From sequence record ON529852.1: a DNA stretch of 64,000 bases; one strand, given 5' to 3'. Both the position numbers and the translations under genes were made by a program. Below the pieces are notes generated by a model, which saw nothing but the letters and a program-made list of their open reading frames with translations, did no database searches and was not told the DNA's origin. Below, one piece after another: positions 3,619 through 63,513 of this stretch. Numbering within the stretch: the first letter of the stretch is position 1; the number at the start of each line of letters is the position of its first letter.

Positions 3619-3936
3619 GCTACTGTATCCTCAGAGTTTTTAATGGTGGTCGCGATTGAGGAGGCGGCCCCCGCCTCGGGCTCCCCCTCGGACCGACCAC
3701 CGGCACCCGAGGGAATGAGTGAGGAGTCATGTTTCCCAAGGAAACGTGACTCCGTTCTTGTTTCGCGGATCGCCATGCGGGCGCTCGACGCGGAAAGTGG
3801 GTTGCCCATTCGGGCGAAATCTGTGCCGGCAGTTTACGAGGGCCGGCGGCTCGGCGGGCTGTTTAAGGAGAGCCCGCAGTCTCCGATCGACGGTGCCGCC
3901 GATCACCTCTTGGCGGAGAGGAACCCGTGGGCGGCC
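3619..3936 (-). promoter_or_regulatory. 318-nt multi-hairpin leader of the MCP gene
   Basis: Non-coding gap with at least five stems, including GGAGTCA-N17-TGACTCC at 3723-3753. Confidence 0.5.
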
Positions 3937-4731
3937 TTAGTTCAGGCGCGCACCCTTGTCGCCGTTCGCCAGGGCCAGCTTGTCGTTGGCCGACATGCCG
4001 CGCATCTCGGCGGTCGTCTTGCCGAGCGGGCCGCGCTGGTCGCTACCGCCACCACCGCCAGCGCCGCCGCCGTGCGTGCCCTTGAACATGTGCGGGGCTT
4101 CGTCCTTCAGCTTCATGATCCACTCCTTGGGCGTCAGCGGCGAGCCGCCGTCAGCACCGTACAGTTGCAGATCGCCTTGGAACGCCAGCACACGGCCGTC
4201 GTCTTGGGCGCGCCACACATCGGCTGCGCGGGACAGGATGTCGCGAACCGCCGAGGGCTGGACACCGAGTTCCGGGTCGATGATGGCGTCCTTGATCGCG
4301 GTCGACACCAGCGTGCGCTTGTGAACACCTTCGATCTCGCCGGCCTTGGTCTTCCAGAGCGCGCCTTCCTTCTGGGCGGCGCGAATCTGGTCCTCCAGGA
4401 CCTTCTTCATGTCTTCAGTACGACGGATGACTTCTTCTTCGATCCGGCGGCTGTCGGTCAGTTGACCGTCTTTGACGCGCTGCGAGGTGGCCCGCAGTTC
4501 AGTCAGTTCGTTGGTGAAAGCGGTGGGGTCGTCGCCGACGATCGGCGCCAGGACCTCAACGGCCTTCTTGAGTTCGTCGCGCTCTTTGACGAGCCCGATG
4601 TTGGTTTCGCGGAACTCGTCCATCTTGTCCTGGGGGACCAGATTGATTTGGACCTTATCGCCGTCGGCCTTGGCGTAGCTGCGCAGGGCGTCCGGGATAG
4701 CGTCGAGCGAGTCGAACGTGAAAATCGGCAT
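3937..4731 (-). CDS. probable capsid scaffold protein
   Basis: 264 aa, coiled-coil, Gly-rich linker and short C-terminal helix, immediately upstream of the MCP. Confidence 0.65.
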   Translation of the reverse strand: MPIFTFDSLDAIPDALRSYAKADGDKVQINLVPQDKMDEFRETNIGLVKERDELKKAVEVLAPIVGDDPTAFTNELTELRATSQRVKDGQLTDSRRIEEEVIRRTEDMKKVLEDQIRAAQKEGALWKTKAGEIEGVHKRTLVSTAIKDAIIDPELGVQPSAVRDILSRAADVWRAQDDGRVLAFQGDLQLYGADGGSPLTPKEWIMKLKDEAPHMFKGTHGGGAGGGGGSDQRGPLGKTTAEMRGMSANDKLALANGDKGARLN

Positions 4732-4845
4732 AAGTGGATGTGTCTCTTGGACCCTGGACCCCAGGGCATGGCGCTACGACCCGTGCGTCGCGAGATGATG
4801 TGTGCGGACGTCGCCTCGGGAGCGCAGTCCTATTCGGGATGAGCG

Positions 4846-4919
4846 GGACCCTAACAAAAAAGATCGCCATTGTCAAGATTCTCAGCAAATAACGCTTGCA
4901 ATCCTGACAATGGCGATCT
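4846..4919 (-). promoter_or_regulatory. 20-bp inverted repeat acting as terminator and containing the capsid-operon promoter
   Basis: IR 4861-4880 / 4900-4919 (1 mismatch) followed by a T-run on the minus strand; TTGACA-17-TAGGGT starts within the arm. Confidence 0.6.
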
Positions 4920-4950
4920 ACAGATGGGGGTTTGCCGGAAGTTCGGCGGA

Positions 4951-5520
4951 TTATTCGGCGAGACGCTGCTTCAGAGTCTTGACAGGTTTGCGGTTCTTCC
5001 GATCAATAACGAAGCCGTAGCGGGCCATGTCGTTTTTAGATTTCTCCTTGTGGCATGGGTCCTTACACAGTATCTGGACGTTCTCCGGCTCCCAGAACGA
5101 CCAATCCCCAAACGCCATGAAGAGGGGGATTACGTGATCAGCCTCCCATGCGTCGGACATATACTTCCAGACAGTACCGCACTCGGCGCATTCACCTTGG
5201 TCGCGGAAGAAGACATGCTGGCGCATGACCGCAGGATCAGATCGGAGCAAGTAGTTGCCGACGCAACGCTTCGAACACCACGACCGCCGCAGGTTGAGCG
5301 TGCCATCCTTCTTCAGAATCCGGACGCCGCACCAGCGGCAATGTCCGGGCGGCTGGCGGTTGATCTTGCTGGGGTGGGTGCGGTGGTTATAGGACACAGG
5401 CAGTTTCGAGCCGCGCGGCTTCTTGGCGCGGCGAGGCCGGCGCGAGGATGAGCGGCGGCGGCTAACAGTACGGGACGGCGTCTTCGGAGGAGAGGCGCGC
5501 CGCGCGGGGCGGCGGGCCAT
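4951..5520 (-). CDS. HNH endonuclease
   Basis: CRWCG and WCSKRC Zn motifs; ECAECG...EADHVIPL...N..ILCKDPCH HNH core; TGATG coupling to the upstream gene. Confidence 0.88.
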   Translation of the reverse strand: MARRPARRASPPKTPSRTVSRRRSSSRRPRRAKKPRGSKLPVSYNHRTHPSKINRQPPGHCRWCGVRILKKDGTLNLRRSWCSKRCVGNYLLRSDPAVMRQHVFFRDQGECAECGTVWKYMSDAWEADHVIPLFMAFGDWSFWEPENVQILCKDPCHKEKSKNDMARYGFVIDRKNRKPVKTLKQRLAE

Positions 5521-5651
5521 CAGACGGTCTTCGGCTTTCGCCGGCTCCAGAAGAGGGCCGCCGTCTCGCGATGCGGCGAGCGGTCAAGCACCTTCTGCAT
5601 CTCAGTCGCCAGGCGCGCGGCGCCCGGAAGGGTAGGGTCGTAGTCAGTCAT
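5520..5651 (-). CDS. hypothetical protein, 43 aa
   Basis: Fills the gap and overlaps both neighbours; not in the ORF track. Confidence 0.6.
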   Translation of the reverse strand: MTDYDPTLPGAARLATEMQKVLDRSPHRETAALFWSRRKPKTV

Positions 5652-6096
5652 CAGTGAAGAGGTGACGCAGCGCCATCGCGTCCCAGTAGGCGTTGTGCTG
5701 GACGGCGCCCTCCAACGTGGTCGGATAGGCCTGGGCGCGGATCATCTCGAAGGTGAGGTGGCGCTTGGAGATCATCTCGCCCGGACCGGTCATCAGGGCG
5801 CGGCAGAAGTAGGCGATGTCGTCGGGCCAGTCCGAGATGATGTGGGGGCGCTCATCGCCCAGCAGGAAGGCGGCGATGGTGCGGGCGGCGTTGGCCGGCG
5901 TCAGGTGATCCCAGATGGTCTGGGTCTCGGGGACGGCGCCCATCAGCGGCTTGACGTTCTCTTCCACCCAGGGCGTGCAGGGCTGATAGGCCCGCTCCAG
6001 GATGATGTAGAGGGCGCGGCCGTCCTGGCGCACCAGGGCCAGGCTCAAGAGGTCGCCGCCGAAGCCGTCGAACTCGCAGTCGAGGAAGTAGTTCAC
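5644..6096 (-). CDS. DEDD-family 3'-5' exoribonuclease (Rv2179c-like)
   Basis: YFLDCEFDG, DWPDDIAYF and HNAYWDA motifs. Confidence 0.85.
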   Translation of the reverse strand: MNYFLDCEFDGFGGDLLSLALVRQDGRALYIILERAYQPCTPWVEENVKPLMGAVPETQTIWDHLTPANAARTIAAFLLGDERPHIISDWPDDIAYFCRALMTGPGEMISKRHLTFEMIRAQAYPTTLEGAVQHNAYWDAMALRHLFTDD

Positions 6097-6341
6097 AGGA
6101 AGTAAATCCGTTGCTCTCGACCAGGAGAGAGCAGGGTGGGAAGCATCTCCACCAGCCAGCGCGAATAGCCGTCGCGGGCGTCCTGGGTTTTCAGGCGGTG
6201 CTCCGGCGGCGATACCACCAGGATGGTGTCAAACCGGGCAGCGGTGCAGGCCCCGACGACGAACACCTTGATGTCGTCGCCCAGGGCCGGCGCCAGCCGA
6301 TCAGCCAGTTTCGCGTCCCAGTGAAAAAGCGCGGTCTTCAC
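6093..6341 (-). CDS. hypothetical protein, 82 aa
   Basis: GTG start with GTGA overlap; similar to the C-terminus of 10882..11358. Confidence 0.7.
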   Translation of the reverse strand: MKTALFHWDAKLADRLAPALGDDIKVFVVGACTAARFDTILVVSPPEHRLKTQDARDGYSRWLVEMLPTLLSPGREQRIYFL

Positions 6342-6610
6342 GTCAGCTTCCCCTTCAGCGCCGCCAGGTGGGCCAGGTTGTCGTGGTGGATGCGCATCGC
6401 GTCGAGCAGCGCTTCGTAGGCCGTGACGGCATGCAGCCGGAGGTTCTCCAGGTCCGTGCCGCTGCGCCGGCCCTTGGCGGGCGCTTCGGTCATGGCGCTG
6501 TTGTAGGCGTTGTGGGCCAGGGCCTGTTCGCGGTGCACGATCGTGATCTGGGCCAGGGAGACCTTGGCCTGGTGGATCGCCTCGCGCAGCTTGTCCTTGC
6601 GGGTGCTCAC
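6338..6610 (-). CDS. hypothetical helical protein, 90 aa
   Basis: GTG start overlapping the upstream stop. Confidence 0.7.
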   Translation of the reverse strand: MSTRKDKLREAIHQAKVSLAQITIVHREQALAHNAYNSAMTEAPAKGRRSGTDLENLRLHAVTAYEALLDAMRIHHDNLAHLAALKGKLT

Positions 6611-7044
6611 AGGCGGGTGTCCTCGTCGCCGTCGTCGCCCGTATAGAGGGGAAAGCCGCGCCAATCCGCAGGCGGGGTCGGCAGGACCTCGATCTGGGCG
6701 CCCGGCGGACCGACCCACTCGGCGAACCGAACCTCATGCGGGAACCGGGCGCGGCAGTCGGCGGCGGTCTTGTCGTCGCCCTGCACGAACAGGGTCTTCA
6801 GGTCGTCCAGCGTCCACGGTCCCGTGGGGTTTTCCAGCAGGATGTCGGACATCTCAGGCGTCACTTCATAGCCCAGCCGTTCCAGCGTGGTGCGCAACGT
6901 GAGGGGCGACGCCATGTCTGCCGTCAGGTGAATTGTGCCTGGCTCGGTGCGCACCAGGGCGTCGTAGAGTTCCGGGTCCGACAGATAGAGGGCGCGTTCG
7001 TCCCGCTCGGCGGCGATCTCGCCCAGGGTCTTGTCAGCCGACAT
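6607..7044 (-). CDS. hypothetical protein, 145 aa
   Basis: ATG 7044 with RBS; coupled in the operon. Confidence 0.75.
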   Translation of the reverse strand: MSADKTLGEIAAERDERALYLSDPELYDALVRTEPGTIHLTADMASPLTLRTTLERLGYEVTPEMSDILLENPTGPWTLDDLKTLFVQGDDKTAADCRARFPHEVRFAEWVGPPGAQIEVLPTPPADWRGFPLYTGDDGDEDTRL

Positions 7045-7459
7045 GGCGGTGCTCTTCTTCAACTTCAGCTTCTTGCTCAGCCTTTGGGCCGAGGGTGGCG
7101 CGGACCTGTTCGATCCAGGCGCGGTTATCTTCCGCCGTCGCGGCGCGCGGCGGCAGGTGAGGACGAAAGCCGACGACTTCATGGGAGCCAGGGGCGTAGA
7201 CGATCTCGACCGCCTCCGCGTGAGCGATGTCGCTCTCCAGTTCCTCGGCCGGGCCGGCGATCTCAAGAATCGCCAGCGCCAGCCTGCGCGCCAGGCGACG
7301 GTCGAACAGCATCGTGTTCTGCCCGGTCACGATCTCCACACAGCGACCGTCGGGGTTGCCGATCGTGCGGAAGACGTAGTGGAACCGGGGGTCCATCGCT
7401 TCGGTGCAGCGCCAGACCATGAGACCGGCCTGGATGGTCACGCTGAAGTCGTCGACCAA
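7034..7459 (-). CDS. hypothetical protein
   Basis: 141-aa ORF with TTG start and typical codon bias. Confidence 0.65.
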   Translation of the reverse strand: MVDDFSVTIQAGLMVWRCTEAMDPRFHYVFRTIGNPDGRCVEIVTGQNTMLFDRRLARRLALAILEIAGPAEELESDIAHAEAVEIVYAPGSHEVVGFRPHLPPRAATAEDNRAWIEQVRATLGPKAEQEAEVEEEHRHVG

Positions 7460-7464
7460 CGTCG

Positions 7465-7605
7465 TCAGCGCCGCGAGATCGGCTGCAAGGCGGTGGTGTT
7501 CATCAAGGCGCTGCGCAGCGTCTTGTAGACCGGGACTTCGTAGACCTTCGGCGGAGCGCCGGTGCTGAAGTCATCGACGTAGGTGTATTGGATGGGGTCG
7601 GTCAT
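7465..7605 (-). CDS. hypothetical protein, 46 aa
   Basis: GAGA RBS plus ATG; fills the gap. Confidence 0.55.
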   Translation of the reverse strand: MTDPIQYTYVDDFSTGAPPKVYEVPVYKTLRSALMNTTALQPISRR

Positions 7606-7615
7606 GGGGGTCTCG

Positions 7616-7837
7616 TTAACGGGGTTGGATGTTGTGGCGGCGTTGGGCGCGCCGGCGACTTTCCTGGTCGCCCAGGTCGAGCCAGCGCAGGAAGGCGAGC
7701 AGGGAAAGGCACAGGCTGAGCGCCGCGCCCAGTTCGACGCCCATCGACGAAGGCGGGGTCATGGACCCGAAGATCACGAACAGGCTGGACGCCAGCGCGA
7801 TCAACGAGGTCACCAGCCACAGGGCACGATTGCTCAT
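7616..7837 (-). CDS. small membrane protein
   Basis: Two hydrophobic segments; ATGA coupling. Confidence 0.7.
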   Translation of the reverse strand: MSNRALWLVTSLIALASSLFVIFGSMTPPSSMGVELGAALSLCLSLLAFLRWLDLGDQESRRRAQRRHNIQPR

Positions 7838-8082
7838 CGGAACCACCGGCCGAACACGAACTCAGCCAGCAGATAGAGCCCGGCCGCGACAGGCGGGATC
7901 GCCGCGAAGATCGAGACGGGCAGGATCATCACGGCGAAGTCGTGCTTCCACAGGGCGAACGGCAGCGAGAAGATCGCGCCGACCAAGGCGCCCAAGAAGG
8001 CCAGGGCCACAGCGGCGCCGAGGAAGGCCAGGCCGACGAGGAAGGTGAGCGCGCCTTTATCGATGACGGGGGCAGCGGCCAT
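7834..8082 (-). CDS. small membrane protein, 82 aa
   Basis: Strongly hydrophobic ORF with RBS. Confidence 0.75.
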   Translation of the reverse strand: MAAAPVIDKGALTFLVGLAFLGAAVALAFLGALVGAIFSLPFALWKHDFAVMILPVSIFAAIPPVAAGLYLLAEFVFGRWFR

Positions 8083-8083
8083 G

Positions 8084-8827
8084 TCATTCGCCTCCGTCGA
8101 GCAGATGTTGGACGCGGACCCAGCCCGCCGTGTCGATCTTGGAGATCGCCGCCAGCAGCAGGCCGACCAGGGTGTCCTTGTGGACCTGGGGTCCCGCCAT
8201 GCCGTGCACGGGCGGCTGGCCGCGTGGCGCGATGATGCCGGCCCAGGTCTCTTCCTGGTTGAACTTCTTCATCACCGTCAGGGTGACGCCGTGGCCCCGG
8301 CTCTCGTGGTAGCGGCGCTTCGGGAAGCTGTAGGTCGCGCCGGCGCGCAGCACTTCGATGCCGTCGATGTGGAGGTCGACGCCTTTCTGGCGGATGGTCG
8401 GTTCGGCCGCGCCGAGATGGGCCGGCATGACCTCCCATTCATCGAACCGGCCGAAGCCTTCCAGAACTTCTTCGCCCGATCCGGCGGTGGTGCGCCAGCC
8501 CGGCGTGATCGACAGGAAGATGTTGGTCACGGCGCCCAGCAGCACCGTCGAGGTGAAGTCGAAGCGGTGGTCATGGCGGCAGCCGAAGGACTCCGGTTCG
8601 GTCGGCAGGTCCGGATGCCACAGGTGCAGGCGGACGTCCTCGTTCAGATAGACCTGGGCGAAGCCGACCCCGGCGTGATAGCGCGGCTTCAACGCGCCGC
8701 TGAGCAGTCCCGCGCGGACAGTCTGGTAGAGAGGATGCGGGTCGGGCACGGAGAGGATTTCCTTGATACGGGCGTTGGCGGTCGCGCTGGCGCGTTTGAG
8801 GGTTTCGGGGGAGACGCGCCGCGTCAC
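8084..8827 (-). CDS. cupin-like (double-stranded beta-helix) protein
   Basis: RLHLWHP...HDHRFDFTSTVLLG...YHES metal-binding His pattern; GTG start at 8827. Confidence 0.6.
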   Translation of the reverse strand: MTRRVSPETLKRASATANARIKEILSVPDPHPLYQTVRAGLLSGALKPRYHAGVGFAQVYLNEDVRLHLWHPDLPTEPESFGCRHDHRFDFTSTVLLGAVTNIFLSITPGWRTTAGSGEEVLEGFGRFDEWEVMPAHLGAAEPTIRQKGVDLHIDGIEVLRAGATYSFPKRRYHESRGHGVTLTVMKKFNQEETWAGIIAPRGQPPVHGMAGPQVHKDTLVGLLLAAISKIDTAGWVRVQHLLDGGE

Positions 8828-10219: not shown

Positions 10220-10571
10220 CGAGCGGCAGGCCGGTCTTGAGGTCGAAGGTCAGACCGGCGGCCTTGGCCTCTTCCATCTTGCGCTTGACGTGGGTGAACT
10301 CGCAGCACGCGAACTGGAAGCCGTGGACCACGTCGGCGTAGACGAAGATCGGCAGTTCGCCCGCCAGCTTGGCGGCCGCGAAACGTGACTCCCACGCCGC
10401 CTTCAGGCGCACGATGTCCAGCGGCGACTCCTTGACCGCCAGATAGTCGGTCTTTTCGGTCGCGAAGGTCGTGTGGACCAGGGTGCGGGCGGTGGAGCCG
10501 GGGCGCGCCGAGACGATCTGCTCCGGCGCGACGTAGGCATGCTCGCCGGTGGTGAGGGTGAGGCGGATCAT
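10200..10571 (-). CDS. hypothetical protein with FlbD/SwrD-like N-terminus, 123 aa
   Basis: MIRLTLTTGE..YVAPEQI...LAVKESP..IV pattern; paralogue of the next gene. Confidence 0.6.
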   Translation of the reverse strand: MIRLTLTTGEHAYVAPEQIVSARPGSTARTLVHTTFATEKTDYLAVKESPLDIVRLKAAWESRFAAAKLAGELPIFVYADVVHGFQFACCEFTHVKRKMEEAKAAGLTFDLKTGLPLDASPDH

Positions 10572-12034: not shown

Positions 12035-12035
12035 G

Positions 12036-12743
12036 TTACTCGGTGGTGGTTTGGGTCGCCAGGTAGGCCTGGATCGACTCGTGGTCGCCGCGCTGGGCGG
12101 CTTCGATCTGTTCGCGGGGAAGGCCCGTCATCCGCATGAGACTGCGGATGTTCCGCTCCGCCAGTTCAGCCGGCGTCACCTCGGGGATGACGAAGGTCTG
12201 GGGGTCCTTCATCTGACCGAACATCCAGGTCTTGATCTGGGCGCGGTGCGCGACTTCCCAGGCGCGGACCGCATCCTGGAGCAGACGCTGAAGGTCTTCT
12301 TCGGCCGTGACGTCGTCCGGGCTGCGGATGAAAATCCAATCGCCGGCCGCCTTCGTGAGGGCCGAGATCAGGGCGATCGTGGCGGCTTCAGCGTCGCCGG
12401 TCAGGCCGTCCCAGCCGTCCTCGCCCCAGCAGTCCTCATTGGCCTCCATGAAGAGGTCCAGGACTGCTTCACTGTCGAAACGAAGCGCACCGGTGGCCTG
12501 GTATTCAGCCAGCAGCGCCTGGGTGTCGAACGCCGGCGGCACGGTGGTGCGCTTGTCGGCTTCACAGACGTAAATCGTGACTCCAGGCTCAGGACCGAAG
12601 GTCGTTTCGACCGCCTGCTTGAGCGCGTGCGCCTTGGCCTCCTCGAAGCTGTCGAACGGCCCGTGGGCGTATTCGAACTCTTCGTGGTCAGCCCAGTAGA
12701 AGCGGAAGACGCCGTCGGAGGGTGAATCGTCCCAGAGCGCCAT
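12036..12743 (-). CDS. hypothetical protein, 235 aa
   Basis: Long ORF with typical codon bias. Confidence 0.8.
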   Translation of the reverse strand: MALWDDSPSDGVFRFYWADHEEFEYAHGPFDSFEEAKAHALKQAVETTFGPEPGVTIYVCEADKRTTVPPAFDTQALLAEYQATGALRFDSEAVLDLFMEANEDCWGEDGWDGLTGDAEAATIALISALTKAAGDWIFIRSPDDVTAEEDLQRLLQDAVRAWEVAHRAQIKTWMFGQMKDPQTFVIPEVTPAELAERNIRSLMRMTGLPREQIEAAQRGDHESIQAYLATQTTTE

Positions 12744-22570: not shown

Positions 22571-24552
22571 CAGGTGGCGCTACCGGGTCGACGCGGGGTG
22601 GTGGCGGCGGGAGCCGGCTTGTTCGCGGCGGCCTTGGCGGCGGCGTCAGCCTGCTTCTCCTGGATGTCCAGTTGGCGCTGGGCCTTCTGCGACGGCGGGG
22701 CCTGCTCGATGTCGCCCAGTTCGCGCGAAGCCGAGACGGACGTCGCGCCATACTGCTGCGCGAAGGCCAGCTTCTCTTCCTCCAGGGCGCGGGCGCGTTC
22801 CTGAAGGTCGATTTCCTGCTGCTGGAAGTCGGCTTCGCGCGCGATGCGGGCCTGCTCCAGTTCCTGGGCGCGGGAGACGTAGCCGCGACGCATGGCTTCA
22901 GCGTCCGGTTGGCCGACGAAGGAGTTGACGTCCTTCATCTTGGTGGTGAACTCGTCCAGGGTCTCGCTGGACGGGATCAGGCCGTACTTGATCCACACCT
23001 CATAGACATGCTCGGTGGTCAGGAGCCCGGCTTCGACCAGTTGCTGCACCGCGCGGATGGCGCGGGCGTCCAGGGCGGTCGACAGGAAGGTGGTGTCGAT
23101 CTCGTAGCGGACCTTGGCGGTGTCGCTGAGCAGGACGTCGCGGAACATCAGCCAGAAGCGCACGACCTGGGTCATGCCTTCTTCCAGGGCGGTGATGACG
23201 TTCAGCAGCAACGACTGTTCGTTGGCCTCGCGCATCGCCGACTGCTGGTTGGATTCAGAGGTCGACTTCGAGGCGCCCGGCATCATGCGGCCGCCGATCG
23301 CGGCGATCTGCTGTTCCTTCTCGTTCAAGGCGCGTTCCAGGGTCTTCAGACCCTCGCCCTTGAACTCCAGGATGCCCGGCTGTTCGCCCGACGGCACTTC
23401 CCAGACGGTGCCGGGACCGATGTGGTATTCCGCCGCGTCGTTGTCGGCGTTGCCCGGCGCATAGTAGGTCGGCAGGGCGGTATAGAAGCGACCGTACTCC
23501 AGTTCGGCGTAGGTGCGGTAGTGCTTCAGGTTCAGGTCGACGATGTCGAGGATCGGCGGCTTTTCGCAGTCCGCCGCATTGGAGAAGGCGCCGAAGAAGA
23601 CGAAGGGAATGAACCGCAGCGGGTTGCCCCGGATCAGCGGCGTCAACACTTCCTCGGGGATGCCCGTCGGGTCCTCGCGATAGACGCGCTGGACGTAGAT
23701 GCGGCTGCCGTCCTCCTGGAACTCCAGAACCAGTTCGCGATAGAGGGTGGCGTAGTGGTAGCCGCCGGCGGTGGACGGCTCGGGCATGGGTTGGCGCGCC
23801 TTGCCGGCCGCCGGGGTCAGGGTTCCGTCAGCGGTGCGGACCATGGCGGTCTGGGGGCGTTGACGGCGGCCACGGCGGTTCGGCTCATTGATCCACCGGT
23901 TATCGTGACTCCCCGGTTCCTGCTCGCGCACGAACTCGCGCAGGAGGACGCGGGTGGGGACATAGAAGCCGTCGACCTCGTCGATCTGCCAGTCGATGAT
24001 GTTCTCGGCCGAATAGCCGACGGCGAACGCCTGGGGCTTGGCGCCGGGCGCCGACTTGGCGGCGTCGACCAGAACGCCGAAACGGCCCAGGGCCAGTTGC
24101 TCGGTCGCGATGGTCTTGGCGAAGGTGGAATGGCTGGAGCCGTCTTTGGCGAAGCGATAGAGCGACGGCGCGATGTCCTGGCCGGCGTTGACCACGATCT
24201 CTTCACCGTTGACGCCGCGCGCGATCACAGCGCCGGGACGCGGCAGGCCGCGCACCTGGGGCGGACGGCGGAAGACCTGGCCCACCATGCCCGCCAGGGT
24301 CTGGTTGGTCATGTTGTAGAAGACCGCACGGTGCAGGTATTCTTCGTACTGGTCGCCGTCAGAACCCGTCATCGGGCGCAGGTATTCCGCACCCTTCTTC
24401 TTGATCTCACGCTCGCCGGCGATGGCGTCACGGATTTTCGACCACTCGGGGCGCCAGTATTCGTATTCGGGGTGGACGACGAGGTGGCTGAACGCCTGAA
24501 TCGCGCGCTTGGTGCGGCTGATGTTCGTCGAGTTGGGCGCAGTGCCGGCCAT
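22570..24552 (-). CDS. portal protein (DUF4055-type, phiCbK-like)
   Basis: 660 aa; HPEY..W..W..IRD...YL.RA.FYN.T..TL.GMVG.VFR and PP+LD+.DLN+.HY motifs. Confidence 0.9.
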   Translation of the reverse strand: MAGTAPNSTNISRTKRAIQAFSHLVVHPEYEYWRPEWSKIRDAIAGEREIKKKGAEYLRPMTGSDGDQYEEYLHRAVFYNMTNQTLAGMVGQVFRRPPQVRGLPRPGAVIARGVNGEEIVVNAGQDIAPSLYRFAKDGSSHSTFAKTIATEQLALGRFGVLVDAAKSAPGAKPQAFAVGYSAENIIDWQIDEVDGFYVPTRVLLREFVREQEPGSHDNRWINEPNRRGRRQRPQTAMVRTADGTLTPAAGKARQPMPEPSTAGGYHYATLYRELVLEFQEDGSRIYVQRVYREDPTGIPEEVLTPLIRGNPLRFIPFVFFGAFSNAADCEKPPILDIVDLNLKHYRTYAELEYGRFYTALPTYYAPGNADNDAAEYHIGPGTVWEVPSGEQPGILEFKGEGLKTLERALNEKEQQIAAIGGRMMPGASKSTSESNQQSAMREANEQSLLLNVITALEEGMTQVVRFWLMFRDVLLSDTAKVRYEIDTTFLSTALDARAIRAVQQLVEAGLLTTEHVYEVWIKYGLIPSSETLDEFTTKMKDVNSFVGQPDAEAMRRGYVSRAQELEQARIAREADFQQQEIDLQERARALEEEKLAFAQQYGATSVSASRELGDIEQAPPSQKAQRQLDIQEKQADAAAKAAANKPAPAATTPRRPGSAT

Positions 24553-24778
24553 GTAGGGATGTGTCGGTCAAAAAGACCGGGAGGGGCGTTGTCCGAACGA
24601 CGAACCGCGACCCTCCCGTAGGGTCAGACGAAAATGTCGGGGCCGAGCGGCTCCGAACGCCGTCATACCTGCCATGAAACGGCATCTGTGTCAAGATTTA
24701 CGGCAATCAGCGCCTCCGATCGAGTCATCAATCGCCGTGTTAACCCTCTTTTGCCATTGACGCTGACAGAATCATGGC

Positions 24779-32792: not shown

Positions 32793-32899
32793 AGGGTCCC
32801 CGGCGATGAATTGGGCAGGGTCCCCGGTCGAAAAATCAGGCAGGGTCCCCGGCGATGAATTGGGCAGGGTCCCCGGTCGAAAAATCAGACAGGGTCCCC
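32793..32899 (+). repeat. AGGGTCCCC array, locus 1 (5 units, 24/25 bp period)
   Basis: Cores at 32793, 32817, 32842, 32866, 32891. Confidence 0.9.
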
Positions 32900-44240: not shown

Positions 44241-44406
44241 GGGGTTGCTCCCGTTGATGTGCGGGCATATTGCACGCCAAGGTCTTAACAACAAGTTAAC
44301 GCCGCGTAGATTTTTCAGGGCGGGCGGTCGTTAAGGTTAATGCGAAAGACTCGCACAGGGCGGCGTTAACCTTAACGGAATCGTCCGAAAAATTAACCAT
44401 GCCCGT

Positions 44407-44438
44407 TGACGCTTTCTTAACGACTCGGCGCTAGGCTC
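44407..44438 (+). promoter_or_regulatory. + strand CtrA-type promoter reading into repeat locus 2
   Basis: TTGA-N7-TTAAC-N8-GCTAGGCT, the same geometry as the cassette promoters. Confidence 0.55.
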
Positions 44439-44608
44439 AAGGGTTCCATAGCCACGCCTCGCGCCGGGTCCGACCCCCCCGCGCGCGGTGTCACGCGCTC
44501 GCCTCATCCGGGGCGGGGCGCCCGGCCACGCGCCCCGACATCAGGAGGCGCGAGCCCGCCCGGCTGGGCGGTCGATCGGTCATGCCGGCGACCGCCAGGG
44601 CGGGGGTG

Positions 44609-44796
44609 CGTCGAATCGAAACGGCGTCAGGTCAAGTCGGCCGGCGTCGAAACGAAACGGCGTCAGGTCAAGTGCGTGCGCGTCGAATCGAAATGGCGTC
44701 AAGTCAAGTTCGCTTGCGTCAAATCGAAATGGCGTCAGGTCAAGTGCGCTTGCGTCAAATCGAAACGGCGTCAGGTCAAGTGCGCGGGCGTCAAGT
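44609..44796 (+). repeat. 36-bp tandem repeat x5 (CGTCA/GTCAAG array, locus 2)
   Basis: Units start at 44611, 44647, 44683, 44719, 44755. Confidence 0.9.
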
Positions 44797-44981
44797 TCGC
44801 CTGGGCGGGACGCGCCGACGCCCGGCGGGCGAATGCCGACCGGGCGTCTTTTGATCAGGCGGGAGCCCGATGAATTCGAGTCACGGAACCTAAAAACAGA
44901 GTCCGATGAGCACGAGGGCGAAAACCATCTTCGACGCGCTACAGAGTTTATCGAGCATATTCAGGGGCTTCCTTCTACTAC

Positions 44982-45084
44982 GGAGTCACGTCTGGTGGAA
45001 AACGTGACAGGGAACCGCCGGAGTCATCGTTCGTGGCTAAACTGACTCCGAATTGGAGTCACGTCTGGTGGAAAACGTGACTCC
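44982..45084. repeat. three GGAGTCA-N16-TGAC(TCC) dyads
   Basis: 44982, 45020, 45055; the first and third share 27 identical bp. Confidence 0.85.
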
Positions 45085-45096: not shown

Positions 45097-46104
45097 TCAG
45101 GCCTCGTCTTGGAGGACGACCGTGGCGGCGGTCGTGCGGCTGGCGAACTGCTCGCTCGCGATGCTCCCCTTCAGCCCTTCAAAGGCCATGATGCTCGCCC
45201 TCAGGTCCGGGGCAATGTAGTCGGTCCCCTCAGCCGACGCGTCCGCCTGAAACAGGTCCAGCAGGCGCGCCCGCACCCCGGCGGCGTCGTCCGCATAGAG
45301 GATCGGGGCGCCCTCCTGCTCGGGTTCGATCCGATACGGGCGGCGCTCGCACTGGATGTCGAACGGGCCTTGCCAGTTGCGGACCTCGGCCGGCGCCAGG
45401 GCGGCGTCGGACAGTTCGTCATAGACGCCTTTTTCGCGATCGAAGCAGGCTTCAACCTCGGCCTGCGAGACATAGAAGGCGTGCCGGGCCTCATCCGCCG
45501 CGATAGCGTGGTCCATGATCCAAGCCTGGCCTTGGAAGGTCGCGCGATAGGGCAGGGTCTCGGGCGCCGGCAGGGCGGACGCCGGGGGATCGCGGTCCAT
45601 CCAGTAGCGGTAGAGGGCCGCCCAGGCGCGCGCGCGCTGGCGGTCCCCCGTCGCGGGCAGGTAGGCGTCGTGCAAGGCCTCGGCGGCGGCGGTGCGATCC
45701 GGCGTGTCCGGGTCGGCCTGATCCGCATCAAAGGCGTCGAAGGTCAGCAGGACGGCCTGCGTGTGGCGGGCGGTCCATTCGCCGTCCGGCCCGGCCGCCA
45801 GAACCTCGCGCACTTCGGGAAGGGTCAGGTGGGAAAACTGGGCAGGGTCCCCGACGATGAATTCGGCAGGGTCCCCGACGATGAATTCGGCAGGGTCCCC
45901 GGCCGTCGATTCGCGAGGGTCCCCGATGATGAATTGCGCAGGGTCCCCGGCGATGGATTCGGCAGGGTCCCCCCGCTCGATGCTTTCCGCGATGCCGTAG
46001 AGCCGGCCGATCAGGCCTTGGGCGGCTTCCGGCGTGGGGTTGTGACGCAACGCCAGCACTTGGGCGGCGGCGGCGCGGATCAGGGCGGGATAGGTGATGC
46101 TCAT
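45097..46104 (-). CDS. hypothetical protein, 335 aa, with 6x GDP(A/R/T)xxxx repeat
   Basis: CtrA promoter plus RBS; the repeat is encoded by the AGGGTCCCC array. Confidence 0.8.
   Translation of the reverse strand: MSITYPALIRAAAAQVLALRHNPTPEAAQGLIGRLYGIAESIERGDPAESIAGDPAQFIIGDPRESTAGDPAEFIVGDPAEFIVGDPAQFSHLTLPEVREVLAAGPDGEWTARHTQAVLLTFDAFDADQADPDTPDRTAAAEALHDAYLPATGDRQRARAWAALYRYWMDRDPPASALPAPETLPYRATFQGQAWIMDHAIAADEARHAFYVSQAEVEACFDREKGVYDELSDAALAPAEVRNWQGPFDIQCERRPYRIEPEQEGAPILYADDAAGVRARLLDLFQADASAEGTDYIAPDLRASIMAFEGLKGSIASEQFASRTTAATVVLQDEA
45844..45972 (+). repeat. AGGGTCCCC array, locus 2 (6 units, 24 bp period, inside a CDS)
   Basis: Cores at 45844, 45868, 45892, 45916, 45940, 45964. 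Confidence 0.9.
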
Positions 46105-55417: not shown

Positions 55418-55479
55418 GGCGTCTCCTCCATGGGTGATCTCGATTGAGACCACCCTACAGGCAAGAAGTTAACAAGAGG

Positions 55480-57784: not shown

Positions 57785-57922
57785 GGCGGTCTCCTGATCC
57801 GGCGATGTCTCACCCTAGCCGCAAGGTCTTAACAAATCGTTAACGCCGGTCAGCCTCGGCGCTGCGTTAAGGTTAACGCGGTCGGGTCGCAAAAAGGCGC
57901 CCGGTCGAAGCCGGGCGCTGGT

Positions 57923-58837: not shown

Positions 58838-58847
58838 CGGGGTCTCC

Positions 58848-59045
58848 TTAGAGATGGATCGCGGCGTCGAACGCCTGGGATTGCAGTTTCTTGGCGGCTT
58901 CGGCCTCGGCGGGGTAGAGCCGGGCCAGGCCGTCAAAGCGTTCTTTCTGATGCGAGCGCTCGCCCTCGGCGGCGGTCATGTGCATGACCTCGCCCCACAG
59001 GTGGGCCATTTCGAGGATCAGGACAGAGCGGCGGGAAGCGTTCAT
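58848..59045 (-). CDS. hypothetical protein, 65 aa
   Basis: CtrA promoter plus RBS. Confidence 0.75.
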   Translation of the reverse strand: MNASRRSVLILEMAHLWGEVMHMTAAEGERSHQKERFDGLARLYPAEAEAAKKLQSQAFDAAIHL

Positions 59046-59097
59046 GGCGGTCTCCTTGTTGACCTCGCCACCCTAGCAGCGAGGTCTTAACAAGAGG

Positions 59098-59583
59098 TTA
59101 ACAGCGGCGAAGCATTTCACGCATCAGGGCTTCCTCGTTGCGGGCGATGTCCAGCGCGGCGCGGTCGTGGCCCTGCTCATACGCCAGCTTGGCCTGCTGT
59201 CGGCAGATGTCCTGGCGCTTGCGGATGTCCGCCTCGGACAGGGTGCGGAACAGGGCGTCGGCCTCCTGATCGACCTTGGCGGTCCATTTCTGCTGCGATT
59301 CGTCCTCGCTTTGCAGATGGGCCGGGAAGTAGAGTTCAGCGACCTCTTGCGCAAAGAAGGTCCCGTCGTTGCCGAGCGCCTGACAGATGGCCTCGACTTC
59401 GCCGGGGGCGATCTCCTCGCAGAGCGTGGTCTTGTAGTCGCCCAGGCCGTCGCCCTCTTCGATGAAGCGCGCGATTTGAGTGAGGTCCATGGCGTCCACC
59501 TTGATCCGGTCCTGAGGATCGCGGGCGAGGTGCAGGACCGTCACGGTGACGGTGGTGCGGATGAAGGTCGGCGTGTCGGTCAT
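59098..59583 (-). CDS. hypothetical protein, 161 aa
   Basis: CtrA promoter plus RBS; stop in a CtrA box. Confidence 0.8.
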   Translation of the reverse strand: MTDTPTFIRTTVTVTVLHLARDPQDRIKVDAMDLTQIARFIEEGDGLGDYKTTLCEEIAPGEVEAICQALGNDGTFFAQEVAELYFPAHLQSEDESQQKWTAKVDQEADALFRTLSEADIRKRQDICRQQAKLAYEQGHDRAALDIARNEEALMREMLRRC

Positions 59584-59741
59584 GGGGGTCTCCCGCGTTT
59601 CGTTGCTCAGGTTCTAGCACCGATTCGTTAACAAGAGGTTAACAAGGTTCGCGGCGGCGCCGGGCGTTAACCTTAATGCGCTGTTAAGGTTAACGGCGGG
59701 CGGGCGAAAGGGACGCCCCGGCGCGAGGCCGGGGCGCGGGG

Positions 59742-59954
59742 TCAGTAGGGCCGGTCGAGGATGCGCCAGCCGGGCTTGTCGTCGGGGCCGGTCTCCGGCT
59801 CGACCTGATAGACGGTCCAGCGCTGGCCCATCGGCGATTGCAGGGCGGCGGTGGTGTCCGGGTAGGTCTTTTCGGTCACGTCGCGGTCGTCCTTGGCGAG
59901 CCAGTCGCCGACCCACGGTTCGCCGGTGCGGTGCAGCAGGTAAACGGCCCCCAT
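59742..59954 (-). CDS. hypothetical protein, 70 aa
   Basis: TGATG coupling. Confidence 0.7.
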   Translation of the reverse strand: MGAVYLLHRTGEPWVGDWLAKDDRDVTEKTYPDTTAALQSPMGQRWTVYQVEPETGPDDKPGWRILDRPY

Positions 59955-60166
59955 CAGACGACCGCCAGCAGGCGCGAGTGCGAGGTCTCGACCGAATAGG
60001 CCTCGATCTGGAGCCCCGGCAGGGCGGCGCGCAGTTCGTCGCGCACAGCGAGGGCTTCGGCGGGGTCTTCGGTGGTCAGGCGCAGTTCGCCGATCCGGCG
60101 GGCTGGGGCGCCCTCGGCGGCGCGGCGCGACAGTTCCAGCCGCAGGTCGTAGGGGGTGTCGGTCAT
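59954..60166 (-). CDS. hypothetical protein, 70 aa
   Basis: CtrA promoter plus RBS. Confidence 0.75.
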   Translation of the reverse strand: MTDTPYDLRLELSRRAAEGAPARRIGELRLTTEDPAEALAVRDELRAALPGLQIEAYSVETSHSRLLAVV

Positions 60167-60219
60167 CAGTGTCTCCCGTGATTGAGCGTCCGGTATAGCC
60201 GGAAGGTCTTAACAAATCG

Positions 60220-60591
60220 TTAACGGCTGGGTGCGCTTAGGCGGGCGATGATTTCGTCGTTCGTCATCGTGTCCATCAGGTCCTGGACCTGCCGGGCCTT
60301 GTCATCCTCGACCGCCTGGGCCGCCGCCTGGGCGCGGCGATGCTCGGCCAGCGCCGCCTTGCCGGCCTCGGTGGTCTCCGGGTCGATGGTCATGTAAAGG
60401 CTGACCTCGCGGCCCTGCCGATCCACGAAGGTCAGGCTTCCAGACGGCCGCACCTTGACGGTGAAGTGATGCTTGACCAGCCGCTCGGCGGTTTCCTGAC
60501 CGAAGTCGCCGCCGAAACTGCCGCCCGCCGCCTTGACGGTGTTGTCGCTCTTGAGCCGGGTGTGATAGCCGACGTTCTTGTAGGGGGGCAT
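60220..60591 (-). CDS. hypothetical protein, 123 aa
   Basis: AAGGAG RBS; stop in a CtrA box. Confidence 0.75.
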   Translation of the reverse strand: MPPYKNVGYHTRLKSDNTVKAAGGSFGGDFGQETAERLVKHHFTVKVRPSGSLTFVDRQGREVSLYMTIDPETTEAGKAALAEHRRAQAAAQAVEDDKARQVQDLMDTMTNDEIIARLSAPSR

Positions 60592-60601
60592 GGGGCGCTC
60601 C

Positions 60602-60940
60602 TTAGAAGGGAATGTCGTCGTCGAACGACGGGGGCGGGGCGTAGGTCTGGGCGGCGCGGGCGCGGCGGGCCGCGTCCATCTCGGCGCGCTCCTCGTCCGT
60701 CGCGCTCCAATACTCGTCGTCTTCCGGGTGCGCGCCGGGCTCGCCCTGATAATGCGGGTTGCGGACCCAAGCGTCGAACGGGTGCAACAGCCACTCACGC
60801 TCGGGGACCTCGTAGCCTTCCGAACGGGCGAAGCCCGACAGGGCCAGGCTCATGAACTCGCCTTGGCTCAGCGACTCCATCGCCAGAGCGTCTTCCTTTT
60901 CGCGGCGGGCCTCTTCGGCCATTTCGATAACGTCACGCAT
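60602..60940 (-). CDS. hypothetical phage protein, 112 aa
   Basis: CtrA promoter plus RBS; WLLHPFDAWVRNPHYQG.PG.HPEDD motif. Confidence 0.8.
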   Translation of the reverse strand: MRDVIEMAEEARREKEDALAMESLSQGEFMSLALSGFARSEGYEVPEREWLLHPFDAWVRNPHYQGEPGAHPEDDEYWSATDEERAEMDAARRARAAQTYAPPPSFDDDIPF

Positions 60941-61120
60941 CGGCGTGTCTCCTTGTGAGCCACCCTTATGCCATCCAGAAGTTAACAACAAGTTAACGCC
61001 GACGCTTTTCTGGATTTTTCTTCGGGCGGCGGCTCCGGGCGTTAACCTTAACAGCCTGTTAAGGTTAACGCGACCCGGTCGCAGGTGAAATCCGGTGTCC
61101 CAGGGTGGGACACCGGCCTT

Positions 61121-61189
61121 TCAAAAGGTGAGCAGGATGACCAGCAGGGCCAGAAAGAGGCGGGAGGCTCCGGCCAGCTTGTCGATCAA
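61121..61189 (-). CDS. possible hydrophobic peptide, 22 aa
   Basis: TTGA overlap; RLFLALLVILLTF. Confidence 0.35.
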   Translation of the reverse strand: MIDKLAGASRLFLALLVILLTF

Positions 61190-61785
61190 GAGCGGTCGGC
61201 CAGCGCGCGACGGTTCAGCGCCGCCAGCAGGTCGTCCACCAGAAGCTTGTGAAGGCGACGCTTTTCAGGATCGCCCTCGTCCCGCAGCGGTACGTCCACC
61301 AGAGGCGTGGCCTCGGCATCGTAGGCGAAGATGATTTCGGTCACGCCTTGCGCCTCTTGGGCGTAGTAGGCGGGCTGGATGAAGGCGACAGGACGACCGT
61401 CGCGAGTGACTTCGCCGCTCAGGGCGGCATCGAAGGCGCCGGCTATGTAGGTCTTGATGGCGTCGCGGTCCTTACCGCTCACCTTCAAATCGAAGCCTGA
61501 CGTCAGCGAGGGGGTTACGGTCACGACGTGTTCCGTCCAGCCGTCATAGCCGCCGCTGGCGTCCATGTGGTGATAGGATGTCAGGAAGACCAGCTTGGAC
61601 GGCGTCGAGCGGTCCAGATCAAGCGTGGTCCCCGCATCGAAGCCCGATCCGCTGGGCATGGCTTCCTTGACCATCGCCGTGAGCCTGTCGGTGTGGCGGT
61701 CCAGCCATTCCGTGTTGTCGGTGGCGATGCAGGTCAGGCGCGCTTGCACCAGCGTCGCCAGAGCGACATAGAGAGGACGGATCAT
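61186..61785 (-). CDS. hypothetical phage protein, 199 aa
   Basis: CtrA promoter plus RBS; PSGSGFDAG...YHHMD..G.YDGWTEH.V.V.PSL motif. Confidence 0.8.
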   Translation of the reverse strand: MIRPLYVALATLVQARLTCIATDNTEWLDRHTDRLTAMVKEAMPSGSGFDAGTTLDLDRSTPSKLVFLTSYHHMDASGGYDGWTEHVVTVTPSLTSGFDLKVSGKDRDAIKTYIAGAFDAALSGEVTRDGRPVAFIQPAYYAQEAQGVTEIIFAYDAEATPLVDVPLRDEGDPEKRRLHKLLVDDLLAALNRRALADRS

Positions 61786-61938
61786 CAGGGTCTCCTTTGT
61801 GTGTTCCGAGGCTGCAATCTACCCGACAAGGTCTTAACAAAAAGTTAACAGCAGCGCAATCGCTTTTCTTCGCGGCGTTAACCTCTTGTTAACTTCTTCG
61901 TGGGATAAGGGTCAGGTCAACAACACAGGAGATCGCCG

Positions 61939-62184
61939 ATGGGCGAAGTCATCCCGCACCGCGTCTGGCATCACAAGCCGTCAGGCCGCACCGCCAGCAT
62001 CTTCGGCGCCGTCCCTTGGGTCTCGGCGGCGCAAGAGTCCGAATGGGAACGGGTCACGGTCGGCTGGACCGTCCGCCACCCGGACGGCACGACCGGGGTC
62101 GGTCGCTTCGCCTTCGAGACGAAGGACGAGGCGCAGGCTTGGGTCGATAAGAATCCCAACTTCCCCGGCATGAGCCAAGGCTAG
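61939..62184 (+). CDS. hypothetical protein, 81 aa (only + strand cassette)
   Basis: + strand CtrA box at 61878-61892, CAGGAG RBS, GCAA-loop hairpin after the stop. Confidence 0.85.
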   Translation: MGEVIPHRVWHHKPSGRTASIFGAVPWVSAAQESEWERVTVGWTVRHPDGTTGVGRFAFETKDEAQAWVDKNPNFPGMSQG

Positions 62185-62443
62185 TCACAGGGGCGTCGGT
62201 CGCAAGGCCGGCGCCCTTCGTCGTTGCGACCCGCTCGCGTTAACCTTAACAGAGCGTTAACCTTAATGCCCCTGCCCGCTCCAGGGGTATGACCGGGTAG
62301 GACCAGGTATGACCGGGTCATACCGGCGCGGATTCCCACTGAAAATCACCCAAATTCGCCGAATTGCGCCCGAAATCGCCGGATTTTGACCCTAAAACGC
62401 TGTTTTTGCTCGATTTTTCGGTATTTCAGGCCCGGCGGCGGCC

Positions 62444-62597
62444 GTTAACCTTAACAAGGCGTTAACCTTAACGCGGTTTTGGTTAACGGGGCGTTAACCT
62501 TAACGCCTGGATGGTTAACGCGGTGTTAACCTTAACGCGGTGATGGTTAACGGGCCGTTTACCTTGACGGCGGGAGGGTTAACGGCCCCAGGGTTAA
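62444..62597. repeat. 32-bp-period tandem array of CtrA boxes
   Basis: TTAA-N7-TTAA at 62451, 62483, 62515; near-match at 62547; half-site at 62579. Confidence 0.85.
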
Positions 62598-62606
62598 TCG
62601 GGGCGG

Positions 62607-62873
62607 CGTCAAATCGCGCTCGCGTCAAATTCGGCCGGCGTCAAATCGAAACGCCGTCAAGTCAAGTCTGTCGCGTTGAAGCGCGCTCGCGTCAAATCGG
62701 CCGATCGTCAAATCGCGCTCCCGTCAAATCCAGATCGCGTCAAATTCGCGGGGCGTCAAATCGCGCTCCCGTCAAATCGACCGGGCGTCAAATCGGCGAG
62801 GCGTCAAATCGACCGGGCGTCAAATCGTCGAGGCGTCAAGTCGACCGGGCGGCCTGAAGCGGGCCGGCGTCAA
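62607..62873 (+). repeat. CGTCAA(A/G)T array, locus 3 (15 cores, 16-bp period)
   Basis: 62607, 62623, 62639, 62655, then 62690 to 62834 every 16 bp, and 62868. Confidence 0.92.
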
Positions 62874-63075
62874 GTCGGGCTGCCAGGGCGCGCCCGAGCG
62901 GGCTTGCGCGGCGCTCCGCCTCCCAGGGAGGACGCCTGGAAGAAACGGCCTGAAGCGCGCCCCAGCGCCTCTTTTTACCCCGAGCCGGGGCAGGGTCAAG
63001 CCGAACAGGGTCGAGAAGGCCGTTTTCCGGGCCGTGGAGCGCCCTGGCGCGGGCGGGGCGTCCGCAGGCTCGGCA

Positions 63076-63513
63076 GAGTCACGAAACCCATCCACGGGCC
63101 GGAAAACCAGGCAGGACGGGCGATTGTCAGTCATGATACCTGCGAACGATGACTCTGCCGGGATTTTTGTCAGTCACGAAACCCGGAGGCGGGCTTAGCC
63201 GGCGATCCCGGCGCCCAGGCGGGTCAGTGTCAGCGATTGTATCAATGCGGGACACAATAAGGCGAGATTAGGGCGAAATGCGATTTCAGGGCGGAGTCAC
63301 GTTTGCCGGAGGCGGAGTCACGTTTGCCGACGAAGAATCAATGACTTAGCGACGATCTGGGCGCGGTCGGCGACCAGGCGGCGGCCGTGAAACAATTCCA
63401 GATCGACGATTCCGGGCGGCGCTCAGAAAACGTGACTCAGTCGAGCCTTTGAAATCATTGAGGAAATCGGGACGATCGCGATGTGAGTCACATCATGCAC
63501 CAACGATGACTCC
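63076..63513. repeat. cluster of (G)AGTCA / TGACT(C) motifs including N16 dyads
   Basis: Dyads at 63128-63155 and 63485-63512; GGAGTCACGTTTGCCG twice (63293, 63314). Confidence 0.75.

Follow-up and report, generated by a model that had tools for sequence, protein, structure and literature searches.

The window analyzed here is the last 64 kb (positions 292,286 to 356,285, sequence identical) of Brevundimonas phage vB_BpoS-Kabachok (ON529852.1), a jumbo phage of 356,285 bp that belongs to the Dolichocephalovirinae and infects B. pondensis LVF1. Nearly all genes in the window lie on the minus strand. We found that the window carries six copies of a dyad in which AGTCA faces TGACT across 16 or 17 bases (N16 or N17). 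They lie upstream of the capsid gene, in a tandem array past a stop codon, and in a non-coding hub near the end of the genome, as follows.

3723 to 3753, minus strand: late-class dyad/hairpin (N17), 107 nt 5' of the major capsid protein start (3618) and 186 nt past the stop of a scaffold-like gene (3937).
44982 to 45011, minus strand: third copy of a tandem triple dyad, with one arm degenerated to TGACA.
45020 to 45049, minus strand: middle copy of the triple dyad (N16), with conserved arms and a poorly complementary inner part.
45055 to 45084, minus strand: first copy of the triple dyad (N16), 14 nt past the stop of the coding sequence (CDS) at 45097 to 46104.
63127 to 63156, no strand assigned: early/hub-class dyad (N16) in the terminal non-coding hub, with pairing confined to the arms.
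63484 to 63513, no strand assigned: early/hub-class dyad (N16) in the terminal non-coding hub.

We compared Kabachok with the whole genomes or site regions of Marchewka, Gurke, Kikimora, CcrPW, CcrColossus, and CcrSwift. Genes were called with a caller based on GC content at third codon positions (GC3), and the calls matched the deposited annotation.

AGTCA-N16/17-TGACT has five exact matches in the window, versus 0.02 expected, and none of 100 shuffles reached five. The matches lie at 3725 to 3751 (N17) and at 45022 to 45047, 45057 to 45082, 63129 to 63154, and 63486 to 63511 (all N16). In the sixth copy, at 44984 to 45009, the right arm is TGACA; this copy and the one at 45055 form a 27-nt direct repeat. 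An earlier sequence-only reading of this DNA had listed these dyads, and we found that its positions are real for the five exact copies and the degenerate one; its coordinates for the exact matches are 1 to 2 nt off because its count started at the flanking G. The degenerate right arm that it reported at 44982 and the N17 spacer that it reported in the capsid leader at 3723 are both there. Its half-site spacing of 21 bp, about two helical turns, agrees with the 21 to 22 bp that we measured between arm centers, within a whole span of 26 to 27 bp.

Across the whole Kabachok genome, we found 9 sites against about 0.05 expected and none for the reversed pattern. Chance frequency, which the sequence-only reading had named as the outcome to check for genome-wide, is thereby excluded. 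Close convergent AGTCA/TGACT pairs in the genome have spacers of 16 (n = 4) or 17 (n = 5), with one at 21; the expectation for each spacer value is about 0.026. The consensus of the dyad is AGTCAYG, about 14 free bases, and CRTGACT. The full half-site is longer than AGTCA and reads GGAGTCA[C/T]GTTTC, with the variants GGAGTCATCGTT and AGTCACGAAAC, and is also found singly. As had been proposed, a single family is common to the two non-coding repeat loci and the capsid leader.

The element recurs in related phages. Five relatives have 8 to 10 dyads each, versus 0 or 1 in controls, and in CcrSwift, which is phiCbK-like, the shared core is reduced to GTCAYG-N11-13-CRTGAC at five loci. Its positions are conserved across genera. 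In the alignment, the capsid site lies 5' of the capsid start codon across lineages, at a distance of about 107 nt; its sense-strand 5' arm, GGAGTCACGTTTC, does not vary among six phages, and its 3' arm decays. A site is also kept across lineages at the junction between PhoH and the tail cassette, where a metagenome contig carries it as well, and another lies 6 to 7 nt past the stop codon of the tail-tube gene. These two sites are 3.93 to 3.95 kb apart in Kabachok, CcrColossus, and CcrSwift. Further dyad sites were found at the junction between a methylase gene and the DNA polymerase gene, at the promoter of a small tyrosine recombinase, and in the terminal repeat, where a tandem triple dyad follows a stop codon and additional copies lie near the physical genome end. 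The triple dyad next to a stop codon recurs in the terminal regions of CcrPW and CcrColossus, a likeness of position and not of homology between the upstream genes. Similarly, the positional counterpart of the dyad at 63484 to 63513 is a CcrPW dyad 715 bp from the physical left end. In Kabachok, CcrPW, CcrSwift, and the metagenome contig, most junction dyads begin 0 to 14 nt past the upstream stop codon and are co-oriented with that gene.

In IMG/VR, the strict palindrome was found in no sequences outside this phage clade. It is nearly absent from bacterial genomes: 596 Gb yielded 4 matches, which fall in unrelated phyla, and none in Caulobacterales. The strict form is therefore not a host Caulobacterales site, and we ruled out a host transcription factor site for the strict palindrome on these grounds. 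We found no description of the motif in the literature on phiCbK genomics, CtrA in phages, or XRE/TgrL, and a full-text literature search was also negative.

Two conserved stretches neighbor these sites. The capsid leader 3' of the dyad (3619 to 3720) is almost invariant from Brevundimonas to Caulobacter phages and contains two GC-rich stems, CCCTCGG...CCGAGGG and GAGGCGG-GGG-CCGCCTC, and these features together suggest a conserved structured 5' untranslated region. At record positions 258,500 to 258,535, the box CCCCGAYAGACC, with a pyrimidine tract 5' of it, lies 15 to 20 nt 3' of the tail-tube hairpin in each of four lineages (Kabachok, Gurke, CcrPW, and CcrSwift).

Our tentative reading, which we hold to be a little short of probable, is that the dyad is a clade-specific site for a putative dimeric phage DNA-binding protein at the borders of transcription units and that the late copies may also form stem-loops. 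The family itself, its fixed geometry, its shared positions across genera, its near-absence from bacterial genomes, and the lack of GANTC conservation are shown here; the binding of a protein, its action on transcription, and the nature of that protein are inferred. According to this model, two invariant 7-bp arms (AGTCAYG and CRTGACT) would be held 26 to 27 bp apart, about two helical turns, a spacing that would place both arms on the same face of the DNA. A putative phage-encoded protein of two-fold symmetry, either a dimer or two dimers, would read the dyad as duplex DNA and would gate host RNA polymerase at transcription unit borders. The early and terminal-repeat copies cluster in non-coding hubs beside CtrA boxes, and one of them lies exactly over the sigma70-like recombinase promoter TTGACA-N17-TATGTG, in the manner of an operator. 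The late copies, between the scaffold and capsid genes, between PhoH and the tail cassette, just past the tail-tube gene, and between the methylase and DNA polymerase genes, are extended to near-perfect palindromes and thus could also form an mRNA stem-loop or a cruciform.

The early/hub copies are consistent with this model. They keep their arms and the exact span of 26 to 27 bp, and their inner complementarity is near chance. When we compared four early-region dyads between Kabachok and Marchewka, 0 of 40 arm positions and 17 of 64 spacer positions had changed, in a region that is about 87% identical. Conserved arms, a free spacer, and fixed spacing, as expected of an operator, are thus all found. 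The hub copies are helically phased, and half-sites in the hubs face either way, with one pair in direct repeat at 21 bp. The sequence-only reading had proposed a methylation-sensitive site for a dimeric protein. The dimeric part has support, in that invariant arms, a 26- to 27-bp span that is fixed with or without inner pairing, and free spacers in the early-region copies fit a two-fold symmetric binder; the methylation-sensitive part does not, for the reasons given below.

The late copies differ from the early/hub copies in their pairing. We aligned 27 late-region dyads from seven phages and found near-perfect palindromes with compensatory changes. All of them keep AGTCA.G in the 5' arm and GA in the 3' arm, 91.3% of the cells of an 11-bp helix are paired, and sliding the partner strand lowers pairing to 26 to 46%. 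The late stems fold at -19 to -23 kcal/mol (z of -5.7 to -8.4).

Single half-sites are found outside the dyads, both in the hubs and within genes. Those in the window are as follows.

63075 to 63087, plus strand: single half-site, AAAC variant GAGTCACGAAAC.
63171 to 63183, plus strand: single half-site CAGTCACGAAACC.
63293 to 63326, plus strand: two identical half-sites GGAGTCACGTTTG (63293 to 63305 and 63314 to 63326) in direct repeat, 21 bp from start to start.
63427 to 63439, minus strand: single half-site TGAGTCACGTTTT.
44877 to 44889, plus strand: single half-site GAGTCACGGAAC, about 100 nt from the triple dyad.
10380 to 10392, minus strand: perfect 13-mer GGAGTCACGTTTC within a CDS, in sense orientation.
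12572 to 12584, minus strand: half-site GGAGTCACGATTT within a CDS, in sense orientation.
23900 to 23912, minus strand: half-site GGAGTCACGATAA within the portal gene, in sense orientation, a weaker match.

Several observations weigh against a dimeric DNA-binding protein. First, both sides of the late stem changed together in 16 cells, versus 3.8 ± 1.6 in shuffled alignments (0 of 500 reached this number), and the inner stems vary even among sites of one genome (TTTC/GAAA, AAAC/GTTT, ATTC/GAAT, and ATCC/GGAT). The variation within one genome indicates that complementarity itself is maintained, and the compensatory changes indicate that pairing itself is selected, as RNA or as a cruciform. Second, single copies of the 13-mer GGAGTCACGTTTC, counted at no more than 1 mismatch outside the dyads and terminal hubs, are in sense orientation in 11 of 11 cases, many of them 0 to 2 nt past a stop codon, which a symmetric DNA binder does not predict. 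Third, a distance of 21 to 22 bp between arm centers is unusual for simple helix-turn-helix dimers. Finally, a Pfam scan for a binder among 25 reading frames in the terminal region of the window gave no matches. The phage does encode an XRE helix-turn-helix protein and the small recombinase, neither of which we could link to the dyads.

Some of this evidence favors an element that acts in RNA. A transcribed GGAGUCAYG... motif, in the dyads as a stem-loop with a sequence-specific stem base, would be recognized by a phage or host factor and would set the ends of mRNAs between cistrons by factor-dependent termination or antitermination, by endonucleolytic processing, or by protection of 5' or 3' ends, so that the mRNAs of the tail-tube cassette and the capsid gene would bear protective end hairpins. 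We regard this as possible and somewhat doubtful. It would account for inner stems that stay paired through compensatory changes as their sequences differ between sites of one genome, for folds of -19 to -23 kcal/mol with z near -6 to -8, for dyads that begin 0 to 14 nt past the stop codon at most junctions, and for a capsid site whose 3' arm decays and whose sense 5' arm does not vary. It would also account for the 11 of 11 sense-oriented single 13-mers, three of which are shared by phages of Brevundimonas and Caulobacter (one 3' of the RNA ligase gene, one 3' of the DNA polymerase gene, and one 5' of the ribonucleotide reductase gene).

The strand symmetry of the pairs argues against an RNA element. 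We found that 203 of 231 cells in the late hairpins are Watson-Crick pairs and that G.U-type pairs number 8 on the sense strand versus 5 on the antisense strand, which is no sense-strand excess and is as expected for a palindrome at the DNA level. Over all sites, G.U and A.C mismatches number 26 and 18, with no significant asymmetry. An RNA element also does not explain early/hub copies that keep the exact span without inner pairing, hub copies in both orientations, or recombinase promoter copies upstream of the likely transcription start. In CcrPW, the promoter arm copies lie downstream of a canonical terminator and are therefore largely untranscribed. The dyads have no U-tract, and an Rfam search of the window matched no family. 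The evidence on mechanism is thus split between a DNA-level binder and an RNA or single-strand hairpin.

We also considered promoter and terminator roles. A promoter role for the single 13-mers was rejected: they have no conserved -10-like element downstream, and the next start codon is 0 to 160 nt away, 4 to 7 nt past the core at the tightest junctions. The dyads were rejected as intrinsic terminators, since none of the 6 window dyads was flagged in a terminator scan and none has a T-run. One row of that scan touches the half-site at 63427 to 63439, where the T-rich tail is the half-site's own ACGTTTTCTG. The dyad stems are about 45% GC in a genome of 65% GC. Their position, shortly past a stop codon and in the direction of the gene, does suit a terminator. 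A canonical intrinsic terminator, GGGGTGGC-TTCG-GCCACCCC with a T-rich tail, does lie directly 3' of the capsid gene (2640 to 2672, minus strand).

The sequence-only reading had pointed to CcrM and GcrA. In a model of this kind, the GANTC arms would be methylated by CcrM and read by GcrA, or by a GcrA-like protein of the phage, as a methylation-sensitive switch tied to the host cell cycle. We consider this very unlikely. The earlier reading had observed correctly that most arms are GANTC (9 of the 12 window arms and, across the Kabachok genome, 16 of 18). GANTC is also depleted elsewhere, with 167 sites in the window versus about 300 expected and 686 in the genome versus 918 expected, and 27% of the sites lie in the intergenic 17% of the genome. 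The arms are thus conspicuous as GANTC sites in Kabachok, which is a feature of the lineage. Kabachok encodes a protein with a GcrA-like domain (PF07750), and the hubs also hold CtrA boxes (compare PMC9437464), which makes a link to the cell cycle plausible.

In contrast, GANTC is not conserved in the arms. It is present in 16 of 18 arms in Kabachok, 15 of 18 in Marchewka, 13 of 16 in CcrColossus, and 11 of 14 in CcrPW, and in only 7 of 14 in Gurke, which infects the same host strain as Kabachok, 7 of 14 in Kikimora, and 1 of 12 in CcrSwift. The invariant core of the 27 aligned sites is AGTCAYG and not GANTC, and the arm context, G-GAGTC-A/T-GACTC-C, does not match the YGAKTCK preferred by GcrA. 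Among GcrA contexts, the related GGAGTCT ranked 30th of 32 (PMC4647560), and a published scan found GcrA motifs in these phages without positional clustering (PMC9437464). The GcrA-like gene is present in Kabachok, Marchewka, Gurke, and CcrSwift and is absent from CcrColossus and CcrPW, which bear the most perfect dyads (8 to 10). We found no match to a CcrM-type methylase (PF01555) in Kabachok. Host CcrM likely methylates the Kabachok sites as a matter of chemistry; since GANTC is unconserved, this methylation cannot be the conserved function and is incidental. The tempting epigenetic link to CcrM and GcrA is therefore corrected here as unsupported.

Kabachok has three methyltransferase genes (record 202,558 to 203,127, 217,781 to 218,788, and 221,325 to 222,035), which are of the MT-A70 N6-adenine type, of the C5-cytosine type, and weakly S-adenosylmethionine-dependent methyltransferase-like. 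Among the phages compared, the MT-A70 methylase is confined to those of Brevundimonas.

The two hubs of the window share an order of modules: CtrA boxes, then an array of GCGTCAAATCG, then AGTCAYG elements. The CtrA-type boxes (TTAA-N7-TTAA) form arrays of TTAAC-N6-TTAAC at 44280 to 44420 and 62230 to 62600 in both hubs and at record positions 45 to 145, just across the record start. These arrays agree with published work (PMC9437464), in which CtrA sites cluster in the terminal repeats of phiCbK-like phages. We rejected the dyads themselves as CtrA boxes: their arms differ from TTAA-N7-TTAA, and true CtrA-type boxes lie beside them in the same hubs. The GCGTCAAATCG array at 62596 to 62881 has about 13 to 15 copies at a strict 16-bp period; in the second hub, at 44571 to 44792, the repeat forms units of 36 bp. 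Each unit, when read from the minus strand, is TTGACGC, the Caulobacter -35 consensus.

We also rejected the dyads as boundaries of the terminal repeat. The CcrPW repeat is 18,407 bp long and has its triple dyad inside, at 13 kb, and the physical end of CcrPW lies in a GGGGACCC repeat. A 24- to 25-bp repeat built on GGGTCCCC forms three arrays in the window, at 32794 to 32892, at 45845 to 45965 (inside an annotated CDS), and at 63807 to 63979 (on into record position 5). The physical left end of CcrPW starts within the same repeat unit (GGGGACCCTTCGAAATT), and one copy of this type lies about 50 nt inside the inner boundary of the 18,407-bp repeat. The GGGTCCCC-type repeat is probably related to packaging or to the termini.

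Two further features lie apart from the dyads. A second dispersed intergenic motif, TGCCGTAAATCTTGACA, occurs on one strand at window positions 24700 to 24740 and at record positions 7,000, 131,990, 222,140, and 238,570, and it looks like the upstream element and -35 hexamer of early promoters. At window positions 469 to 985, a rhizosphere metatranscriptome with a Kabachok relative has contig depths of 18,282 (486 to 693) and 11,603 (761 to 886), versus 152 for the contig over the capsid gene. A candidate non-coding RNA in this stretch is therefore very abundant as RNA.

The composition of the hubs bears on a role in replication or packaging. The dyads may be a signal in single-stranded or cruciform DNA, for example a priming or assembly site on the lagging-strand template, with the hubs as origins silenced by CtrA. 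Three features would fit: the strand specificity of the single 13-mers, a complementarity that is kept with no G.U asymmetry, and the makeup of the hubs, which lie close to the physical genome end and bring together CtrA boxes, iteron-like arrays with a 16-bp period, and dyads. However, 10 to 30 sites per 300 kb are too few for general priming, and the late sites track gene borders precisely, beside stop codons, which a replication signal would have no need to do. We think it quite unlikely that the dyads serve this function.

The recombinase promoter raises another alternative. The small tyrosine recombinase (record 176,815 to 177,560) has 224 aa, consists of the catalytic domain only (PF00589), and is a homologue of phiCbK gp143. 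Its residues R, H-x-x-R, H, and Y are apparently intact, and it occurs in 65 phage records, including phages of Sphingobium, Ruegeria, Mesorhizobium, and Citromicrobium. We found that a dyad overlaps the TTGACA-N17-TATGTG promoter of this gene in Kabachok, Marchewka, Gurke, and Kikimora and that CcrPW and CcrSwift have RTGACT(CC) copies in the same promoter. The dyads may be targets or binding sites of the recombinase, used in recombination between sister copies (circularization via the terminal repeats or Cre-lox-like multimer resolution) or in non-catalytic autorepression.

In favor of this, the recombinase is conserved in every phage that has the element and has no described target (PMC3556154), and in each of the four lineages examined its promoter is overlapped by either a dyad or copies of the arms. 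In addition, the late consensus has inverted arms of 11 to 12 bp around a center of 3 to 7 bp, and dyad copies lie within the terminal repeat. Against it, only the outer 7 bp are constrained, which leaves a variable center of 13 to 15 bp versus the 6- to 8-bp crossover of known tyrosine recombinases, and sense-oriented single half-sites are not explained by a recombinase target. Lacusarx, a distant phage with the same recombinase, has no comparable dyad in its recombinase promoter. To us, a recombinase target has little likelihood on the sequences at hand.

We also considered a phage polymerase or sigma factor that would use N4-type hairpin promoters and found no support for one. We found no match to sigma70 region 2 (PF04542) in the phage. 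PF00940, for a phage RNA polymerase, likewise had no match, which is uninformative, since the PF00940 control matched no genome either. The 3,019-aa virion protein is not a polymerase; it is made up of glycine-rich repeats.

A broader proposal is that a single phage factor reads AGTCAYG dyads across the Dolichocephalovirinae, including phiCbK, and would set the borders of the major late transcription units as well as control the early, terminal-repeat hubs. In its most striking form, the factor would be the gp143-family recombinase, not as an integrase but as a regulator that acts on palindromes or cruciforms, or as an enzyme that recombines sister copies at them. We consider this proposal unlikely as it stands.

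The element resembles several known systems in part. Like tripartite operators of the lambda OR1-OR2-OR3 type, it is two-fold symmetric, its arms are conserved, its spacer is free, and its length is fixed, and it has a tandem of three in an early region and one copy over a sigma70-like promoter. Unlike those operators, its arms are two helical turns apart and not one, its copies are also perfect palindromes at late junctions, and its single half-sites are strand-specific; a repressor was not found. The DNA uptake sequences of Neisseria (DUS) and uptake signal sequences of Haemophilus (USS) in terminators, as well as repetitive extragenic palindromes (REP) and bacterial interspersed mosaic elements (BIME), similarly present a DNA word as inverted pairs directly past stop codons and combine a protein site with a transcript stem-loop. 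In contrast, the phage element has about 10 to 30 copies per genome, in a lytic phage, without a U-tract, and at fixed junctions across genera, and they are not dispersed or mobile.

T7 RNase III sites and antiterminator hairpins of the RAT/boxB type share with the element about ten conserved intercistronic hairpins per genome that flank highly expressed late genes. The phage dyad differs in that it is conserved at the stem base and not in the loop or internal loops, in that its stems are 11 to 14 bp, and in that some copies have no inner pairing or lie in promoter DNA. Caulobacter promoters controlled by GcrA and CcrM (YGAKTCK) are similar in that most Kabachok arms are GANTC and the host has both CcrM and GcrA; they are dissimilar in that GANTC is unconserved in the phages, the flanks are mismatched, and the dyads lie at gene 3' ends, versus single promoter-proximal sites. 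The core sites of tyrosine recombinases (loxP, dif, and the Tn4430 IRS) also have inverted arms of about 11 to 13 bp around a short center, an orphan recombinase is conserved in these phages, and a dyad copy on the recombinase's own promoter recalls TnpI autoregulation. In the phages, however, constraint is limited to the outer 7 bp with a free center of 13 to 15 bp, and each genome has many sites, whose centers all differ.

The phiCbK-like phages are standard tools for the Caulobacter cell cycle, yet how they program transcription is hardly understood, and no RNA polymerase or sigma factor of their own has been detected. Previously, only the CtrA boxes of the terminal repeats had been described in these phages. 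Here we add a conserved cis element at capsid, tail, replication, and terminal-repeat junctions in every lineage examined. It can be used as bait for its regulator, predicts where transcription units start and end, and offers a test of the DNA target of the orphan small recombinase. If the proposal of a single phage factor is true, these sites would constitute a clade-wide regulatory code.

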